The notes under the pieces were generated by a model. The model made no database searches and was not told the origin of the DNA. It saw only the letters and a list, made by a program, of their open reading frames with translations. This document shows positions 12,496 to 22,480 of a DNA stretch of 64,000 nucleotides, piece by piece. The stretch's first letter is position 1. Each line of letters starts with the position of its first letter. A program made the position numbers and the translations under genes. The stretch lies in NCBI GenBank assembly GCA_907165135.1, contig OU015567.1, forward strand, positions 1,178,001 to 1,242,000, given 5' to 3'. This stretch comes from Oikopleura dioica. Its lineage: Eukaryota > Animalia > Chordata.

Positions 12496-12518
12496 TATTC
12501 TTATCTACGAATTTCAAC

Positions 12519-15500
12519 CCTTTTCAATGGAATTATATGCACCGGATCCATATCTCGAAATTCAGGGAGCAGTCCGATCTCGTTCTTTTTCCACCCTTTC
12601 TCCATCTCTTCGCTCTTCCGGATTTTATTCAAAGCCCTTGTCGTAGAAAGCTTGATAAATCGCTCACCAAGCCTGACACTCATAAGAATGAATGCTCCTT
12701 GGAAGCTGACAGAAGACAATTTCGCATTGAAGTGATTACTCGCGATAAAGCCTTGGGCCTCTTCAAAGCGATTCAGATTATATTCTGGCGCATAAAAGTA
12801 GCATTTGTCCGATCTTCCCGTTGGAGCGCAAATAACAACAACAGGGAAGATTTGCTTTTCATTCTCTTTTCTTCTTATTTCGATTTCGTGAGTTCCGATT
12901 GAAGATCCAAAATGAAAGACAAAAAAACCGCTACGACAAAATTACCATAGAGTTGAGCTCTAAGTGGAGATTCGAGATTCTCGAAAGCCAGTAAAGCGCG
13001 CCCGCTTAGTGTGGTGCGGTGTGGTCAGAGTGTGGTGGTGAGTAAGCGCTACCCGTGGGAATTCTCACGCGCTGAGTCCAGGAGGAAGACTTTCTCTCTT
13101 TGGAAGAAAAATCCTTTAAATTATCATTCTTCTATTGTAATGACTAGTTTTTTTATATTAATTGATGGTAATTGATAAAATATACTCAATATAATTTCTC
13201 AAAATCAATAAAAAAAAAACAAAATGATATTTTTTCGACAATCCCTTCTATCATGAAACGCCATATCTTTTCCGAAAGCATTCAAACGCTTGTCCTCGTC
13301 TTTCACAAAAAATTGAGCTCAATATCCTCAATAAGACCTTTCTACAGAGTTCCTTGTCGAGCAACTAACGATGAACAATTGCCTCGAAATCGGCAACATT
13401 GCCTCGCAGCTCAAATTGTCCGAAGTCGACGACTTCATCAATCGTTTTCTTCTTCAAAACTTTACATCTATCCCCGACTTTTGCAAGATCCAGTTCGAAA
13501 GGTTTAAGTTCCTCCTGAGTTCGAACGATCTCCAGGGACTCATTACGCCAGGGTTTGGCAAAAAGGAGGCCTACCGCAAGAAAATCGACTCTCCCGCGCA
13601 GGAGAACTCATGGAACAGATCAAATTCCCGCTCATCCATCGTTGACATCGTGACAAAAATCAACGAGTCATGACTGAGCTCGAGAAATTTCGATTTCGAC
13701 CAGCTGCGCGAATCTCTCTCGTGAAAGAAAATGTAAAAAGAGTACTTTTCTCTTCTTTTCATGATAATTTTTTCGGAGTATAAAACTCCGAATCGGAGAA
13801 AATTTTTCTCAAAATCAAAAATTTCAAATTTTCAAAAAAAATTGAATAAAGAGATATGGCTTTTCACGTCAACTATAAATCCGGAGCTCAGCGACAAGAA
13901 TGGAAACGCCTTCAGAGTTCTATTATTAAGATTCTTCTGTTTGATTTTTCTTCATTTTTATTTTCATCTTTATTTTTGATTTATGCGAGCGCATAAATTC
14001 ACAATCGGTTGGTTCACAATTTCGGTCGAAAAACTGACTGAAGGTGCGGTTGTAGAGAAAGCTTACAACTTCAAAAATGAATATTTCGATGAAATAAGGC
14101 GCACGCCCGGACTTCTTACTGTCTTACAAGTATTCCTCTTTTGAATACATGATACTGTAACGAGCACTGCTCACAGGCAACAGTGTTCACAAATTCAGGG
14201 ATGAAATTTTCATCGCGATTTTCGGTCTAAAAACTCAGTTTCCAAACGCGATTTCGAGGAAGTAAGGAAGAGTTAGTTAAACCAATTTATGGAAGTGATT
14301 TTATGGATCAGGATTTTTATTGGCCGGTAGACAAAATACAGCAATCTTATTGGTAATGTAAAAATGCACCACGAATTGGTTTAGTCTGAAAGAGTCGGGA
14401 TAAACCCAAAAAAGGTATGCATTGAATTTTTTAACCAATCAGAAGCCTGGATTCGGCCAACCAGCCAATCAGCAGCCTAGTAGCTGCCCACGCAAAATTC
14501 GTCGATTCATGCCTCCTTGACGTGGCCATGAGTAGCCAGTCGCATGCCCGGATCAATAATTTCACTCAATCACAGAATATTAACCCGTTGCCGAGCGCTA
14601 ACTGTATAAAGGCCGTCAACGCAAATAGTAAGGCTGGATTTCGAGCCTCGAGGCAGGTTGTAGCATCCTGAATGCAACGTGCTCGGCAACGGGTTAACGA
14701 GTTTAAGGGAGCAAGCTCTGATAAACCATCAAGAAAAATATGTGATAGAACTCTCAAGTCCATGTTTTCGAAATTATGACCTTGTCATTTGGTCAGATTC
14801 AATTGCAAGAGGCTTCAACCGGGTAATTTTCTAATGAATTTTGAAAATTTGTTATTTCAAGTGTTCTCAATCCGATCGTCAGAAGGCCCATGCAGGTGCT
14901 ATGAAGAATTTCTCGACAGTGAACGTTCAAATCAACGGCGGAATGGACATTCTCGAGTTTTTGAGTGTTCTTAGGTGCAACAAGATACTATCTGACCTCA
15001 ATACTTGCCGAGACCATTACATGGACGGGAGCCCCAATATGTTCAAGAAATACCGTGAATTCAAGTGTGCGGAATGTCAAACAAAATGTGACCGTCATTT
15101 TGAGGGGACTCTTGTTGTCAATGGTACTAAATTATAATCTTCCAAGCACAGAATATTTAGTGGGCTTGAACAACTTGCTCAAATCGGACGTGCGACAGTT
15201 CCGGCATCAAAGCTTCTCGGGCCTTGCCAAGAATTTGAAAAAATGTCTTCGCGATAACTTCCCGAAATGTACTCCCCATATCATGCTGCCGATTCTCCCA
15301 GTCAAATATCAATCCGATGACGATTTTAAAGAGCAGCATAAAGAGCTCACTGAAGCGGTATTTATTTTTTAAAGCTTAATTGGATTATTCTTTTCAGCTT
15401 TTGACTGGAACTGACAACCCACTCGAAATGAGAGACTATCCCCTTCCTCAAGGAAGATTCGACAATGACGGAATCCACCTTACAACTCAAGCATCCATTG

Positions 15501-18500
15501 ACTTCTTTTCTTCTGCAATCTCTATCATACAATAAAGCATTCTTAAGCGTCATATCAATGTTATATTTTCTCTTATTATTTTTGCAGTCTATGTATTCGT
15601 CGATTGTTTCTGTGGAAGTGAGCCCGCTTGGAAAGACTAGACATTCTTCATCGCCTTCATCTTTCCACAACGAGCTCCACCCCCACAGAAAGGGGTGGGT
15701 CAATCGCAATTGACCGTGTACAGGAGAAAAGTACTGACTTTAGAATTCTCATGGACTGAGAAAACTCTGTGTAAAGTCAGAATTAAAATAAATTCGCAGA
15801 CAGAAAAATTTTTTCATATTTTATTTTCTCATGCACAGGTATGTATTCGCATTGTTATTATTGTTTTCAATTTATCTATGAAACTCCGACCGTTCACAAT
15901 AAGGATGCCAGAGAAACCTCAGGGCTCGTGTTGCCTTTCGTCATTTTGCGGTTTTTTTGTCCTATACTAGTGAACGTATTCAGAGCAGAACCACGATAAT
16001 GCACTGTCAATCCGTCAAGTTATAACCATCCTAACATATGAAAACAAAAATAGCAATACGAATCCATACATTTAAAAAGACCTATAAAAACTCTGACCGT
16101 TCACGATGTAGGTGCCAGAGAAACCTTAGGGCTCGTGTTGCCTTTCATCAATTTGCGGTTTTTTTTATATTAATGTGTGAACGTATTAAGCGCAGAACCA
16201 CGATAGTGCGCTTTCAACCTACACTTATGGAAGCCTAATTATTTTCCTTAGTCCTAACTTAGCGGGAAACCAGAAGACGAACTTTCTTCGCTCTCCGTAA
16301 GGGATGAGCCACCCCTTTCTTCGCTGAGAAAGAGGTATCTTCTCTCTTCTTTGAAGCCACATGGGCCTTTCTCTTAAATCAGTCACCAAAATAAGTAGCT
16401 GAACTTTGCTTTTTACAGAAAAAAACAGATGACGAACTTCTTCGCTCTCTTTCTTCTTTAAAGCCACAACGGCCTTTCTCTAAAATCAGTCACCAAATGA
16501 CGGCTGAACTTTGCTGTTTTTACAGGGAAAAAGCCAGATGACGAGTTTTCTTCGCTCTCCGTAAGGGATGAGCCACCCCTTTCTTCGCTCTCAGTAAAGA
16601 CCGAACAAGCCTTCACAAATTAGACTCGAAGCCGCAAGCGGCTTCTTGTCTCGAGGACAAAGGACAGACACAACGAGGATGAAAGAGAATGGAGAAAGAA
16701 GGGAGAGCGAGAGATTTAATGACGTGGATTTTTCACCTTGAAAGATCCCTTATTTGCTTTGTATCCTCGTTCAGGATTCGATCCGTCTCTAGCGATCGTT
16801 TCCTTTGCACGCCTGAGGATTCCTCTGCAAGCGTTATTGATCGCGTCTTGGGAGATGTTCGCCCATACACGAGTTAGAATCTCTCTCGCTTCCTCGAATG
16901 AATCGAAGTAAAGCTTGTTCATTCGACCCAGCTCCTTCTTTGTATCCATTTTGAACTTGTGCCAAATGCAAAAGTCCAAAGGATTGAGGTCAGGAGAGTG
17001 CGCTGGCCATTCAGCCAAGCGCGCTCTGCGAAACCTTTCTCCCTCCCCTGTTTTCGCCAGGACACCAGTGATGACATTGTGGATGCCAAAACTTTCGTCA
17101 ATGAGCTTGAGCGATGAGGTTGCTGTGTGGCATGTCGCACCATCTTGAACGAAAATCTTTCCGTCAAGAACGTGCTTAACGCCCTCACCATTTTCAACCT
17201 CCTTGACGAAGCCCATTTCTTTGAGCTCTTCAAACCATGGAACCAAGACAAGCTCCTGATAGCTCTTCTGGGTTCCAGATACAGAGGAAAGCTTTCCCCG
17301 GTTGTCCTCTCTGACGAAAAATCGAAGCGACAACTTCAAATCGATTCCGATTGCAGCTGCAAACATTATTCTTTTCGGAAATTTTTTGCTGAAGTTTAGG
17401 TTGTCTGCCCACGGATTTTCTTCGCCTTTGCGAATCCAGTAGCCGAAATTAGGACCGAGTGTTTCGTCGCGAAATTGTAACGAACACTCATCTGTATGGA
17501 TGAGCATTCCGAGGAAATTTGGATGCTCGTCATTCGTTTCCTCCAGCCACTTACAGAATCGCAATCTCGTATCCTTTACTTCAGCAGGAAGCGCTGGTTT
17601 TGGCTTTTCCTTATTTCTGAATTCGTACCCCATTTTATGGAATAGAGTCTTCACTCTTTGATATTCCGCATAAGAAGCCATTCCGACATTAGCGCATGCC
17701 TCTTTAAGACAGTGAGACTTTGCGAAATGACTGTCACCGTCTTTATGGATCTGAGCAAGAACAGTTTGAACGATCCGCTTGTCTTCCTCGGTTAAGTCGC
17801 GCTCAACGATCTCACGTGGTTGAAAATATTTCGAGATGAATATCTCTTTCTCAAAATATTTGATCTGACCGTTTGGACTAAGTTTGAGGACACGATGATC
17901 AGCTCGTACTGCTTGATCCAAACGCTCAGGCTTATCACTGAGCAGCGAAAGAAATGCCGAATTCATTTCTTTAACGAATCGCTTCGGACCGAGCTCAAAG
18001 TATTTGCAAGAGTTTGAGCACAAAACTTGCAAGAAAAGTCTACCAAGCGCGTGCTTGGCAAGTTTTTTCCATGTTTTTGGAGGTCCGATTGTCGGGAGAA
18101 GAGCGAAATCCTCGTCTGGAAGCTCCTTGACTGCTTTTCGAACGGGCTGTCCGACAATGATGACTTTATCCTGAAGAGCATTCTTCACGTCTTCATGCCG
18201 CCGGATGCACTCAGCATCGAAGACCGCTTGAATGGGGCGTTCTATCAGTTCGATCTCGTTGTCTTCGTCTTCTGATGCGTAGAGGATATTAAGCGCATCC
18301 TCAAAGACAACGTCATCGTACTCGAGCTCAGGTAGAACGACATCAGGAACCTGATCGATTACTGGCGGAACATCATCGAGACCAACCTCAACATATTGTA
18401 TCTCAGGCTGCACTGAGTCGAAGTCTTGCTCAACAATCATCTCCTCAGCCGACTGCTGAGAAGATAAAGCCAGAGAATCAATATTTGGCGTCTCCTCAAA

Positions 18501-21500
18501 GCGATAGGTAGTATAGTTTTTACTACTAGCTTTAGGAGGGACGAGAACATCATCCGAGACAACAAATTTGGAACTTGAGGAAATGTTAATTTTGATGTCT
18601 GGGTTTGAGTTTTTTATCAATAGCCTACTTCGCCATTCGCCTGCTGGTCTTGACTTTCGGCCTACTGATTGAACGATTGGATCCAAATGAGTGATCATAC
18701 AGCCCTTATGAGAACGTTTCGATGGAACAAGCGATTCATTTTCCCGAGGCTTCTTTATAATCTGGGTGAGGCACTTATCAGAATCTTTAAGAGCGGACGG
18801 GACATGAATCTCGAGTTTTACGTATGCGTCTCCGTCATCATAAAGTTCAAGTAATTCGTGGATTTTGCGGACAATTTGAGTTCTTTTGAAAATTCTCGCA
18901 CTTCGTTTTCTTCCTGATTGTCTTTGACGCGCACTTGTCGACATTTTATGCTTATAGGGATAATATTATAAACCCTATTGCACCAAACCCATATTGCACC
19001 AAACCCATATTGCACCAAACCCATATTGCACCAAACCCATATTGCACCAAACCCAAATTGCACCAAACCCATATTGCACCAACCCCATATTGCAACAAAC
19101 CCATATTGCACCAAACCCAAATTGCACCAAACCAATATTGCACCAAACCCATATTGCACCAAACCCATATTGCACCAACCCCATATTGCAACAAACCCAT
19201 ATTGCACCAAACCCAAATTGCACCAAACCAATATTGCGCCAAACCCGTATTGCACCAAACCCATATTGCACCAAACCCATATTGCACCAAATCCTTAAGG
19301 CACCAAACCCAAATTGCGCCAAACCCAAATTACACCGAACCTAAATTGCAACTAACCCGTATTGCACCATCTAGGTAACGAGATACGCAACATTCAATAG
19401 GCGCACTAATGCACTAGTGTCAAGTAGAAATGCACTGTTAGAAAGGTCATTTTTCGATTTTTCATTTTTCAAAAAGTGGTGCATGCAGATCGAATTTTGA
19501 AAATCTGCCAAATTTTGGGCATACAATAGTGTTCAAGCTTGCCTCTCTTGAAAAATTGGGCAATTGAATTTCGGGAACATACCAAAAAATTGAATAAAAG
19601 TATAGTAACATCAGATTTTTAAAGGAGTCTTTGAAGCGGCGGTGGGGATTAATGGGTTAGTATTTCAAAAATTCGTTAAAATCACGGCCTATAAAATTGT
19701 TGAATTCAATATATGAGCATAAAAAAGGACCAAAAATCTTAAGGAATGGTGCCGAAAAAGTGAATGAAAATATGCCCAAAGTCGTTGTTGACACCCTTAA
19801 GGGTACCTAGGTCGAGTTTGGGTACCCCCTTAAACCATTTTCTGACCAAAGAATCGAATTCTTCAAGTTCTAAGGAACAAAAAACTCTACAATGACCCTA
19901 TGGCTATCTAAACGTTTTCACGGTCAAAAACCACTGTAAAGTATAAAATCTATAGGAAATGCTAGAGCCTCAAATTTTGACGAAAAATTTTCCATCTCCA
20001 ATTTTGCTGATTAAGGGCTTAAATGAAAGCTTATGGCCTGGTTAACATCGTAGTGAAGCTTAGAATTGCCCAAGAAAATTAAACTCTGTTCAAAACCGGG
20101 GAAAATGGAAGCTTACCAAGCAAAAATGCGGAATTTGTGAAGACTAGACCAATCTTTTGAAAATTTTCTTAAAAAAATCTTTGAAATCCAAATATCTGCT
20201 CTGTCATGATTGTAGAGGAGGCTTTAGACTTTATGTATCCAAAAAGAAAAAAAATGTTTGTATGAAAATTTTCGCCTGAATTTAGCGTCAAAGTTGGCCA
20301 TTTAAGGCCGAGACGCCAACTTTGAGGGCATTTTTTCTGAAAAAAATTTTTGAAATCGAAAAAACTGCTCTGTCACGATCCGAGATCTAGGATAGATCTG
20401 TTGAATGAGCTATTAAGGAGCTTTTTTCGTTAAGAATTAAGGGTAGTAATTTACCCTCAAAGATGGCCATCTCGACCCAGGTACCCTTAAGTCCGGAGAA
20501 ACAGCTACTTTCATGATGAAAGTTTCATCAGTATATGAATTGAAAGAGCAATCCAAAATTTCAATTTTATTCGCATTTTATTCAATAATAATAAGTCCAA
20601 AATAATATGTCCAAAACTATATAAAATTAAACTGTATGAAAATTTCTTTTAGTGCCAGTAAATTTGCAACTCTGTCTCTATTAAGTTATCTCTTAAATGA
20701 ATTCTCTCTTAATAAAATTTAAAATATTATCCGTTCCTTCTAGACTCAAAAAGTATGAGTGAAGAAAAGAGGATAGGTAGCGGAAGGATGGGGAGGAAAT
20801 CTGGAAAAAACAGGGAAAATCAAGAAGCTAATTGGAGAACCGGTGATTGCGTCGACTGACGTAACATTTCCAGCCTTGAAAAAGGCTTTTTTGTTTTTAG
20901 TTTTAGCCTTGAAAAAGGCTTATTTTTAATGAAGATACTCATCGTTGTCTCCACGAGAGAGAAATCTGGAGGACTTTTTGGGCGAGCGCAGAGAATTGAG
21001 TCTGCGGCGCAGCGCGGAGAATTAATGGGCTCTGATTGGCTGGGGCGCTCCTGCCCTGAAAATGCGCGCGCTCAGAGCTCGCGTTAGAAAATCCAAGCCG
21101 CTCTTTCTAACGCAAAGATTCTCCTATCTCCACTTAGAGCTCAACTCCATGGTAGAAATCCTAAAAAAGTTGATGATCTTACTCGCTTGATTTTCTATTT
21201 TGAACGATCACGGGCACCCCACCCTTTTCATCAACCCTCATCAGATTTCCGACAGCATCGACCAAATAATGCTCGCCATCAAGAACAGTGGCACCGATCG
21301 ACTTTTGCGTCTTACTTACACTTTCTTACTATGAAATGAAAAATGAAAGAAAAACGTTCATAAGAAGTGAACAATGAATTGCTCTCAAGCTCGACATCAG
21401 TGTCATTTTTGTCCGTTCTGAAATCTGTAAAGATGATAGGAAATCTTTTCGTCGTCTCAATATGGGACTTCCGATTTGCCCAACGACCAGTTATCCATTT

Positions 21501-22480
21501 TATTGATGAGGCACCATTCTCATCTGCTTTGAAATTTCGAAAATATATTGCTAAAAGAATGCGCCACAAAAAAATTCGAAATTTTCCTGGAATAGAATCA
21601 AGCTCAACAGACTCAGCTTTCTCAAGGTCGAAAACCGGGATCTTTTTCTGGGGAGATTGAAATTTCTCACAATTGTAATAAGGACAAGGACATCCTCCTT
21701 TGCAATATTTTTCGCCAGGACAGATTTCCCCAGCAGCATCAAAAGATCGTGTCAGCTCGAAGCAAATAAACTCACAGGGCGAAGATGATTTCGCTCTCGT
21801 AGATTCCAAAATAAGCGTTTTTGAGCAAAGATGGCGGCAAATCTTGGTATCATAAAACTTTTTCTTTTGGCATCTGCGAAGATTTTTTTCATTTTCTTCT
21901 TTGCTGAACACTTTCAGGTCTGTTTCTTTTCGATCGATTTTCTGAATTGGTTCAGGAAGAATGAATTCCTTAGTTTCAAAGCATTGCTTCATCAGATGAC
22001 CGCAGTAGTCCATCGACGCTATTTGAAGGCATTTTTTGTAGTTTCGGTTGCAAGTCGAAGTCAGAAAAGTCGTTACGCCTCGTGATTTTTCCAACGACTG
22101 GAAGTTTGCTAGAAAAAGATATTGAACAAAAGATCGATTAAGGCTCTCTACTTATCAAGATGATGGTGACCCAAAAAAGCGAGCTGAGACCGAGGTAGGT
22201 GTACTTCTGCGGGTCGGTGGAAAATCCATGACTCGTGAGAGTCAGACCCTTACGAACTATTTCCTTGTACGTTTTCTTCTCTAAGTCTTCTTTGAGTGTA
22301 TTGATGCTTCTTGAAGATAGTACTTCCTCGGTCTTCAAAAAGACCTTCCCGTCTTTTTGAGTCAGAACACCGAAGCAGTGACAATCCATGCACTAGAATC
22401 CCGATTGTTTTACTTTTTTAATATGCTGAAAACCTGAATTTTCGTCTCAAAAAACCAGTTGTCATTTTTCTCTTTTTCAT
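12519..22480 (-). CDS. Type II membrane Cys-rich/kelch-like protein of an Oikopleura-expanded family, split by the 8.2-kb element in one intron
   Basis: Exons at about 22138-22390 (TM LGLSSLFWVTIILI), 21312-22094 (CPGEKYCKGGCPCPYYNC motif), 21183-21310 and 12519-12930. The last two join in frame (GA|C, KSS-D-GFF) across intron 12931-21182. 5' end uncertain. Confidence 0.7.
13348..13650 (+). pseudogene. BTB-BACK (kelch-like family) gene fragment inside the transposon
   Basis: FLVEQLTMNNCLEIGNIASQLKLSEVDDFINRFLLQNF..FKFLLSSNDL, then in another frame ELMEQIKFPLI, matches the BACK-domain pattern. Frameshifted, with no intact start found. Confidence 0.65.
14276..14386. mobile_element. MITE family B (about 115 bp), nested in the giant element
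   Basis: AAACCAATTT.TGGAA ... AATTGGTTTAGTC termini; core TTGGCCGGTAG.C.AAATACAGCAATCTTATTGG shared with the copies at 53501, 59483, 59610 and 60898. Confidence 0.75.
14544..15535 (+). CDS. SGNH/GDSL-hydrolase-like protein, cargo ORF of the giant transposon
   Basis: Spliced model ATG 14544; introns 14823-14861, 15107-15146 (GA-AG) and 15358-15397; stop TAA 15533-15535 overlapping AATAAA. Motifs in SGNH order: IWSDSIARG, HAGA, NGGMD, DNDGIHLT. The first exon carries a MITE. Confidence 0.7.
14584..14693. mobile_element. piggyBac-like MITE, 110 bp
   Basis: TTAA on both sides (14580-14583 and 14694-14697); 13-bp TIRs CCCGTTGCCGAGC. Confidence 0.8.
15883..16218 (+). repeat. Diverged direct repeat, about 130 bp x2
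   Basis: GACCGTTCAC..GCCAGAGAAACC..AGGGCTCGTGTTGCCTTTC..GCAGAACCACGATA occurs at about 15883-16010 and 16091-16218. Confidence 0.8.
16270..16590 (+). repeat. Diverged tandem repeat, about 110-155 bp units
   Basis: Recurrent blocks GACGAACTT(T)CTTCGCTCTC, CGTAAGGGATGAGCCACCCC and AAATCAGTCACCAAA..GCTGAACTTTGCT. Confidence 0.75.
16716..18944 (-). CDS. IS630/Tc1/mariner transposase, 742 aa, DD55D triad
   Basis: Uninterrupted ORF with the linker LFHKMGY..KPKPAL..RLRFCKW and catalytic motifs IHTDEC, FVQDGATCH and WPAHSPDLNPLDFCIW; 55 residues counted between the second and third Asp. Confidence 0.93.
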   Translation of the reverse strand: MSTSARQRQSGRKRSARIFKRTQIVRKIHELLELYDDGDAYVKLEIHVPSALKDSDKCLTQIIKKPRENESLVPSKRSHKGCMITHLDPIVQSVGRKSRPAGEWRSRLLIKNSNPDIKINISSSSKFVVSDDVLVPPKASSKNYTTYRFEETPNIDSLALSSQQSAEEMIVEQDFDSVQPEIQYVEVGLDDVPPVIDQVPDVVLPELEYDDVVFEDALNILYASEDEDNEIELIERPIQAVFDAECIRRHEDVKNALQDKVIIVGQPVRKAVKELPDEDFALLPTIGPPKTWKKLAKHALGRLFLQVLCSNSCKYFELGPKRFVKEMNSAFLSLLSDKPERLDQAVRADHRVLKLSPNGQIKYFEKEIFISKYFQPREIVERDLTEEDKRIVQTVLAQIHKDGDSHFAKSHCLKEACANVGMASYAEYQRVKTLFHKMGYEFRNKEKPKPALPAEVKDTRLRFCKWLEETNDEHPNFLGMLIHTDECSLQFRDETLGPNFGYWIRKGEENPWADNLNFSKKFPKRIMFAAAIGIDLKLSLRFFVREDNRGKLSSVSGTQKSYQELVLVPWFEELKEMGFVKEVENGEGVKHVLDGKIFVQDGATCHTATSSLKLIDESFGIHNVITGVLAKTGEGERFRRARLAEWPAHSPDLNPLDFCIWHKFKMDTKKELGRMNKLYFDSFEEAREILTRVWANISQDAINNACRGILRRAKETIARDGSNPERGYKANKGSFKVKNPRH
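18976..19368 (+). repeat. 16-bp minisatellite (ATTGCACCAAACCCAT)n, about 24 units
   Basis: Directly visible tandem array that degrades towards its right end and starts about 30 bp upstream of the transposase ATG. Confidence 0.95.
19801..20486. mobile_element. TTAA-flanked non-autonomous element with GGG termini (Kolobok-like), nested in the giant element
   Basis: TTAA at 19797-19800 and 20487-20490; 16-bp TIRs GGGTACCT(A/G)GGTCGAG. Confidence 0.8.

Follow-up and report, generated by a model that had tools for sequence, protein, structure and literature searches.

Transposons of the Tc1/mariner type represent the textbook form of minimal mobile DNA, consisting of a single intronless gene and two short repeats. 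In Oikopleura dioica, an element of this type with a size of 8,208 bp carries a second, spliced gene for a putative SGNH-like hydrolase, and the question raised by this locus is whether the hydrolase gene is an integral component of the transposon, a passenger picked up on the way, or DNA that was resident before any insertion took place. The element occupies positions 12945-21152 of a 64-kb stretch of genomic DNA (C5:1178001-1242000, on chromosome 2; hereafter the window, to which all coordinates without a contig name refer), and the searches were performed against the whole genome OKI2018_I69 (64.28 Mb, 19 contigs). The observations described below altogether favor an IS630-Tc1-mariner (ITm) transposon of DD55D type that was enlarged by passengers, among which the SGNH-like hydrolase gene would be lineage-specific cargo, and we give this interpretation a probability of about 0.62.

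The ends of the element were defined by terminal inverted repeats (TIRs) next to the dinucleotide TA. The sequence 12945-12971 is identical at 26 of 27 positions, with one mismatch, to the reverse complement of 21126-21152 (CCATAGAG.. and CCATGGAG.., respectively), and the inverted repeat reaches 39 nt at 90% if the flanking TA is counted. The 27-bp TIRs and the TA target-site duplication proposed by the initial annotation were both borne out, and so was a size far above that usual for Tc1/mariner elements. Use of other, more internal TIRs by the transposase had been raised as a concern; the TIR core has no further copy within the 64-kb window (0 expected by chance), and thus the element contains no internal TIR. 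A number of inserts within the element, including three miniature inverted-repeat transposable elements (MITEs), tandem arrays and a piece of a gene with a BACK domain, agree with those already recognized, and an Rfam search gave no match. The features of the locus are listed below, with the strand where one applies.

12504-12930, minus strand: downstream exon of the gene that was interrupted, which belongs to a large multigene family
12943-12944: left TA of the target-site duplication
12945-12971, plus strand: left TIR, CCATAGAG type
13339-13638, plus strand: captured BTB/BACK host-gene fragment, 90% identical to C5:7942838-7943156
13985-14102: copy of a short interspersed repeat with ~30 genomic matches at ~78%
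14276-14391: nested MITE of ~116 bp
14580-14697: nested piggyBac-like MITE with TTAA on both sides and CCC..GGG ends, ~50 nt upstream of the first visible hydrolase exon
14764-14822, plus strand: hydrolase exon with SGNH block I (IWSDSIARG); frame open from 14664, GT donor at 14823, provisional 5′ boundary
14862-15123, plus strand: hydrolase exon 2, containing block II (NGGMDI) as well as a Cys/His-rich insertion that is conserved; ATG 14902 is the start of the annotated model
15161-15357, plus strand: hydrolase exon 3; block III (VGLNN) is formed across a 37-nt intron
15398-15535, plus strand: last hydrolase exon (exon 4), in which block V (DNDGIH) and the stop codon are found
15536-15694: non-coding DNA that follows the hydrolase gene, with 80% identity to the metagenome contig L052
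15881-16589: direct repeats inside the element with a spacing of 207 nt, and a 107-nt x2 tandem repeat, all located between both genes
16716-18944, minus strand: intact transposase gene, 742 aa, DD55D (D485, D601, D657), with a long N-terminal extension
18970-19369: tandem array (16 nt x25) that immediately precedes the transposase start; the C3 copy has this array too
19796-20491: nested MITE of ~0.7 kb with 21-nt TIRs and TTAA flanks; copies elsewhere are 77-98% identical, at least 15 of them full-length
21049-21125: right subterminal region, 94% shared with the MITE C4:11792662-11792968
21126-21152, minus strand: right TIR, CCATGGAG type
21153-21154: right TA of the target-site duplication
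21183-21325, minus strand: upstream exon of the gene that was interrupted; at 21182-21181, a GT donor opens the element-bearing intron
Predicted empty allele: ...GACAAAATTA/GAAATCC..., with a single TA

Capture of host DNA by the element is directly shown by the BACK fragment, which was detected by Pfam at 13335-13670 (E 1.9e-5) and was traced to an exon of a gene at 7.94 Mb of the same contig, where it lies inside a 285-aa open frame with 90% DNA identity over ~300 bp. The family of the 0.7-kb nested MITE must have been mobile recently, because its copies elsewhere are up to 98% identical. The array located directly 5′ of the transposase ATG is composed of ~25 repeats of the unit AAACCCATATTGCACC, and could be a promoter or a transposase-binding array.

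The DNA that preceded the insertion was deduced from the interrupted gene, which spans 12504-12930 and 21183-22151 on the minus strand. Removal in silico of 8,208 nt plus one TA from the intron 12931-21182 left a 42-nt GT..AG intron, with both flanking frames open and in phase, in agreement with the excision described in the initial annotation. Three paralogues (L057-L059) carry both flanking exons with an intron of ~43 nt at the same place and no insertion, and one of them, L057 (C1:16562513-16562929), aligns continuously across the junction. The 8.2 kb might be considered as a chance composite, with resident DNA enclosed by a solo MITE end at its left and by a shorter autonomous element at its right, in accord with a left end that has only its TIR in common with the MITE family described below and a left boundary that is without confirmation by a second full-length copy. 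Since the paralogue intron is so short, however, all the DNA between the two TAs must have been inserted, and an assembly around resident genes is ruled out; in addition, no TIR is present inside, and the two ends show the same G/A asymmetry as the ends of the MITEs. A composite of any such kind is thus regarded as highly improbable.

A contig from a DNA sequencing run of another individual (X6) matches the flank exactly up to 12944 and then continues into 162 nt unlike 12800-18799, which is suggestive of an empty allele. In the same run most of the region 13000-16800 was present, and the transposase was absent at 95% identity or more.

The genome contains at least 184 matches to the downstream flanking exon; their protein identity is 50-83%, some have stops, and a block of them is clustered at ~5.3-6.4 Mb of C4. 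As judged from these matches, the interrupted gene is one member of a very large Oikopleura-specific family. The initial annotation was right in placing the interruption within a ~42-nt intron of a host gene, with the correction that this gene belongs to a family of at least 184 matches. No Pfam domain was found in the interrupted gene, and the leads from a language model (Kelch/laminin G) were weak. The interrupted gene was also considered as a transposon in its own right, and this was rejected because its copies keep introns at conserved positions and a block of them is clustered on C4. Two oligo-dT RNA-seq runs of 2026 with the same species label (X10 and X11) gave 1 and 0 reads, respectively, on 6 kb including the flanking exons. 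These runs are probably from a different cryptic lineage of O. dioica, and with no reads even on the flanking exons they make no test of expression.

The ends of the element were found to be shared by a family of mobile DNA. A genome-wide pattern search detected 52-55 termini with the TIR, against 0-1 in controls (0 in the reversed control), and 53 of 55 termini were flanked by TA when two flanking bases were included in the search. Most of these termini belong to MITEs of ~285-307 bp (~290), at least 35 of which are full-length, and these MITEs repeat the G/A asymmetry between the two ends of the element; in one MITE, C4:11792662-11792968, 106 terminal nt are 94% identical to the right end of the element. 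The number of termini, the TA flanks and the MITE ends shared with the element together indicate that its ends define a mobile family. The giant cargo-bearing family envisaged at first was, however, not supported: a single full-length element and a copy that breaks off within the hydrolase gene were found, and otherwise the family consists mostly of the ~290-bp MITEs. Three variants of the TIR were observed (..AAGTGGAGAT, ..AAGGGGAGAT and ..AAAGGGAGAT), which may mark transposon subfamilies.

The open reading frame (ORF) 16716-18944 on the minus strand encodes a transposase of 742 residues without stops, and the intact minus-strand gene predicted earlier was thus confirmed. Alignment to a profile with hmmalign placed the catalytic triad at D485 (HTDEC), D601 (VQDGA) and D657 (NPLDF), all three being invariant or nearly so in a 73-sequence alignment. 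Between the second and third of these lie 55 residues, counted by the usual convention that the third residue is the one after NP, and the proposed DD55D spacing was upheld. Pfam gave only a sub-threshold match to DDE_3 (E 0.0016) and no helix-turn-helix (HTH) match. A three-sequence profile searched against 1.8 billion representative proteins retrieved a total of 1,545 relatives at E up to 1e-3; 10 of these were examined with Pfam, and six showed sub-threshold to weak HTH_Tnp_Tc3_2, DDE_3 or both.

The position of the transposase within the superfamily was supported by its predicted structure. The AlphaFold model, built on the 73-sequence alignment, had a predicted local distance difference test (pLDDT) score of 84.5, and its 18 best fold matches in PDB were all Mos1, the transposase domain of SETMAR/Metnase or Sleeping Beauty, with E values from 5e-11 to 5e-7 and template-modeling (TM) scores by target up to 0.85, followed by Hermes as the next fold at E 0.04. 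About 390 columns of the model were aligned by Foldseek to full-length Mos1, with a high root-mean-square deviation. These fold matches, together with the TA target and the TIRs, bear out the assignment to Tc1/mariner, and the element is probably an autonomous transposon of this superfamily.

Within the superfamily the spacing of the triad is unusual. In the closest outside proteins, 49-54 residues separate the second from the third catalytic residue, and most of the more distant profile matches have 41 or 37. In a quick maximum-likelihood tree the four DD55D sequences formed a clade with an SH-aLRT support (approximate likelihood-ratio test) of 100, which grouped with metagenome proteins of DD50D and DD54D type (support 91) and was separate from the DD41D-rich and DD37D clusters. 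The comparison with ITm families that had been called for thus yielded a separate DD55D clade; the tree was made without labelled reference ITm sequences, so that the lineage is not formally named. The term 'DD55D' appeared in no transposon paper found in the literature searched, and the genome paper of OKI2018_I69, in which 44% of repeats are unclassified, did not contain 'mariner' or 'TcMar' in a term search (PMC8008620). The element thus belongs to a distinct long-spacer DD55D lineage that is undescribed in the literature searched.

On the plus strand, the hydrolase gene converges tail to tail on the transposase gene, and the spliced structure reported for it was found to consist of four exons separated by GT-AG introns of 39, 37 and 40 nt. 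A database model, OKI2018_I69 chr2.g4189 (P0169, 185 aa), corresponds to the last three of these exons. Conservation of the gene was examined with a metagenome contig of 933 bp from the European Nucleotide Archive (ENA; L052), which is collinear with 14764-15694 at 75% identity. The hydrolase exons are 74-90% identical between the two (74-76% except for the block I exon with 90%) and free of indels; intron identity is 47-65%, and the introns contain gaps. In L052 each of the four exons is open, and the exonic changes were distributed over the three codon positions as 36/27/88, with 60 synonymous and 53 non-synonymous changes. The catalytic S (SDS), G (NGG), N (GLNN) and D..H are kept in L052, as are the cysteines and the first His of the Cys/His-rich insertion, the last His being replaced by Tyr. 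The block I exon has five synonymous changes and one non-synonymous change, and this bias indicates that the exon is coding and hence that the annotated model, which starts at the Met of exon 2, is incomplete. At a much smaller distance, a contig from DNA run X5 (another individual) differs from the window at 13 positions within 14859-15369, and among the exonic differences listed seven of eight are synonymous. As judged from this codon-level bias, which is seen in both the distant and the close comparison, purifying selection acts on the hydrolase gene, which would hence encode a functional protein. The stretch 15536-15694 downstream of the gene favors no reading frame; its 80% identity to L052 is above that of the main exons and far above that of the introns.

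One may ask, nevertheless, whether the hydrolase gene is a decaying passenger whose 5′ end was knocked out by the piggyBac-like MITE, leaving only the transposase to matter. The MITE is indeed located ~50 nt upstream, the open stretch contains no in-frame ATG before the block I exon, the annotated model begins after the catalytic Ser, and the hydrolase part of the truncated copy on C3 differs from the window by four non-synonymous and three synonymous changes. However, such decay is difficult to reconcile with four open exons, intact GT-AG introns, seven synonymous differences out of eight in X5 and the five-to-one ratio in the block I exon, and a start codon could be supplied by an upstream exon or by trans-splicing. 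Removal of the TTAA MITE (114 nt) in silico opened no upstream frame for the hydrolase. Altogether, decay of the gene appears improbable.

The SGNH label given to the hydrolase has moderate support. Four SGNH motifs were recognized by inspection, SDS, NGG, GLNN (formed only after splicing of the 37-nt intron) and DNDGIH, and the ESM Atlas model of P0169 (pLDDT 0.61) matched four GDSL/SGNH clusters with TM scores of 0.60-0.66 over 138-152 residues. The label is thus supported by the motifs and the ESM Atlas fold match but not by the sequence profiles, all of which were blank (see below). A single-sequence AlphaFold model of P0169 had a pLDDT of 38.5 and was unusable. Two word-indexed protein searches with the hydrolase returned only its own model and one metagenome ORF. 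SGNH/GDSL esterases are known in the ORF1p of CR1/L2/RTEX (PMC3905857), and GDSL esterases in the Vesta long terminal repeat (LTR) elements and Terminons of bdelloids (PMC5408684, PMC6431247), whereas no DNA transposon with an SGNH/GDSL esterase was found described in the literature searched.

Linkage of the two genes was examined in the only other copy of the element in the genome, located at C3:2050843-2056035. This copy has kept its right TIR, transposase and spacer along with a 3′ portion of the hydrolase gene, which has the same position and orientation as in the window, but the copy ends abruptly at the position equivalent to 15281. Its left part was detected neither within 12.8 kb upstream nor elsewhere in the genome, and its transposase ORF is broken. 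The missing half was probably removed by insertion of an LTR retroelement or by rearrangement; immediately adjacent, at C3:2050700-2050842, a retroviral-type aspartic protease motif (ALVDTGSS) was observed. The contig C3 (2.9 Mb) is presumably the Y-specific region. A database protein (P0005), a transposase fragment 91% identical to the window transposase, is probably encoded by the C3 copy.

Identity between the two copies is 95-99% over 15281-17677, ~85% over 17678-18077 and ~70% in the part for the transposase N terminus and the right end, and the alignment of 15281-19096 with C3:2050843-2054562 accordingly has the appearance of a mosaic with a sharp change near 17,700-18,100. This pattern suggests recombination or gene conversion between two transposon subfamilies. 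In the middle region of the transposase, 36 synonymous and 14 non-synonymous codon changes were counted (7/8/45 by codon position), and the indels inside the ORF are nearly all multiples of three. The bias for the third position and the in-frame indels indicate that two diverged subfamilies of working transposases existed. The hydrolase half of the C3 copy belongs to the same subfamily as the window copy, and therefore it does not date the association of gene and transposon.

Evidence on the age of this association was sought among relatives of the transposase. Two more DD55D transposase families, B and C, were identified in the genome. Family B is represented by two copies, C5:1318786-1323262 and C1:17027795-17032290 (gene model PAR.g13232), which are 98.3% identical over 4.48 kb, each with a 685-aa open frame and with TA-flanked TIRs of their own (CCGCGGTTGGCAT..); the transposase is ~45% identical to that of the 8.2-kb element over the C-terminal 360 residues. 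The former copy is located only ~77 kb past the end of the window. Family C (C4:2633791-2634756) encodes a 589-aa open frame with 36% identity. A scan of Joint Genome Institute (JGI) metagenomes detected only family-B-like and distant loci, the former including a 5-kb contig (L053) with a family-B-like transposase, and scans of viral contigs gave nothing. No hydrolase-like sequence was found by tblastn or tblastx in or near family B, family C or L053. Because of this absence, the hydrolase is considered to be specific to one lineage and not an ancestral, integral gene. Family B resembles the 8.2-kb element in the DD55D triad, the long transposase, the TA-flanked TIRs starting with CC and the relative strand of the transposase, but is different with respect to the TIR sequence and the size, which is half, and no SGNH-like or other conserved second gene was found in it.

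The same comparison bears on the proposal that the hydrolase is an integral accessory gene of a true two-gene element, kept because it helps the element, for instance in membrane- or lipid-linked steps, by analogy with the role proposed for the esterases of CR1/L2 ORF1p, bdelloid Vesta and Terminon. Purifying selection at both deep and shallow divergence is as expected in this case, and so are the lack of any hydrolase copy outside the element in the genome, the same position and orientation of the gene in the C3 copy, and the conservation with L052 of flanking non-coding DNA, which would be expected of another copy of the element; furthermore, mobile elements have recruited SGNH esterases repeatedly (PMC3905857, PMC5408684, PMC6431247). 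On the other hand, the gene is absent from both sister DD55D families and from their metagenome relative, which seem to be complete one-gene elements of 4.5 kb, the contig L052 covers no more than 933 bp with no transposase linkage shown on it, and run X6 contains the hydrolase region and none of the transposase at 95% identity or more. What stands of the suggested integral second gene is thus its selection, while its absence from the sister families and the single full-length copy speak against it, and an integral role is regarded as possible but unlikely.

The interpretation of the hydrolase as cargo is the more economical one, compared with that of a required transposition factor, and the following course of events would account for the locus. 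By analogy with Mos1 and Sleeping Beauty, the 742-aa transposase would bind the 27-nt TIRs, excise the 8.2-kb unit and reinsert it at TA, duplicating the TA. The hydrolase gene would have been acquired only in the lineage of the 8.2-kb element, which would have grown to about twice the size of its 4.5-kb single-gene sisters through passengers (the hydrolase gene, the BACK piece, three MITEs and tandem repeats). A single insertion event, as displayed by the uninterrupted paralogues, placed the element into the ~42-nt intron of a member of the large Oikopleura-specific family, and at a minimum the hydrolase would have accompanied the transposase to this site and to the Y-specific copy on C3.

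Several observations weigh against this interpretation. With regard to the hydrolase itself, Pfam was blank on single exons and on P0169, NCBIfam and phmmer against PDB were also blank, and a six-frame genome scan with PF13472 gave no match at the hydrolase locus; these searches covered single exons and the database model, which starts in exon 2. The open stretch 14664-14822, which holds the exon with the catalytic Ser, is without an in-frame ATG, and the annotated model begins only after this Ser. With regard to the transposon, a single full-length copy of the 8.2-kb element is present in the genome, and its left end has only the ~29-nt TIR in common with the MITEs. The left half of the C3 copy as it now stands is 95-99% identical to the window copy, so that it gives no independent evidence of old linkage. 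No parent or other copy of the hydrolase gene was found elsewhere in the genome, which fits an old element-borne gene as well as a captured gene with a lost source. Finally, L052 may be derived from a homologous element, as indicated by the conserved non-coding DNA downstream of the gene, and in that case the association is older than recent cargo.

A DD55D element that carries a complete, selected and intron-bearing gene together with a host-gene fragment indicates that elements of this kind can be gene vehicles, in this case in an animal genome that ranks among the most compact. Should the hydrolase be of use to the element, the latter would be the first DNA transposon with an esterase to be found described in the literature searched, and would be linked to the repeated and so far unexplained occurrence of SGNH esterases in retroelements. 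If the esterase is an accessory protein, lipid or membrane chemistry could aid cut-and-paste elements as well, for example in access to the germline or in horizontal transfer. With its intact transposase and defined 27-nt ends, the element is in addition a candidate tool for transgenesis of Oikopleura.

Among known transposons, the element is similar to Mos1, Hsmar1 (SETMAR) and Sleeping Beauty with respect to the TA target, the short TIRs, the DDD triad on an RNase H-like domain and the WP..SPDLNP..D motif. It is different from these in the spacing between the second and third catalytic residues (34 in those elements and 55 here), in the length of the transposase (~340-360 aa against 742 aa, with ~270 aa extra at the N terminus), and in the overall size (1.3-2.4 kb against 8.2 kb with a second gene). 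The rosa/DD41D and maT/DD37D groups have the DDD triad in common with it, but the spacing of 55 sets it apart from both and from mariner DD34D, and it falls into a separate clade in the quick tree, made without labelled references. The initial annotation named the L31 group as two-ORF elements for comparison; L31 is DD37E, with no word on a second ORF in the report concerned (PMC7325037), and the comparison breaks down on the defining spacing. Membership in the L31 group was therefore rejected, the spacing of L31/Mariner-31_CGi being DD37E and that of the present element DD55D.

The ~300-bp BACK fragment copied from the host at 90% resembles transduplication of the Pack-MULE type, except that the carrier is a Tc1/mariner element and that the hydrolase is a whole selected gene and not a fragment. 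The closest parallel by type for the second gene is given by the retroelements, CR1/L2/RTEX with ORF1p and Vesta and Terminon with the GDSL ORF3, in which an SGNH-type hydrolase is likewise located on a mobile element with its catalytic residues kept (PMC3905857, PMC5408684); the likeness is one of type, with no sequence similarity to the hydrolase shown. That a class II (Tc1/mariner) lineage recruited an SGNH esterase as a working accessory protein, in convergence with CR1/L2 ORF1p and the bdelloid retroelements, is a speculative and rather doubtful extension of this parallel. In all those systems, which are retroelements, the esterase forms part of the transcript of the element itself, as a domain or an ORF, whereas in the present case it is encoded by a separate, intron-bearing and convergent gene within a DNA transposon with TIRs and a TA target.

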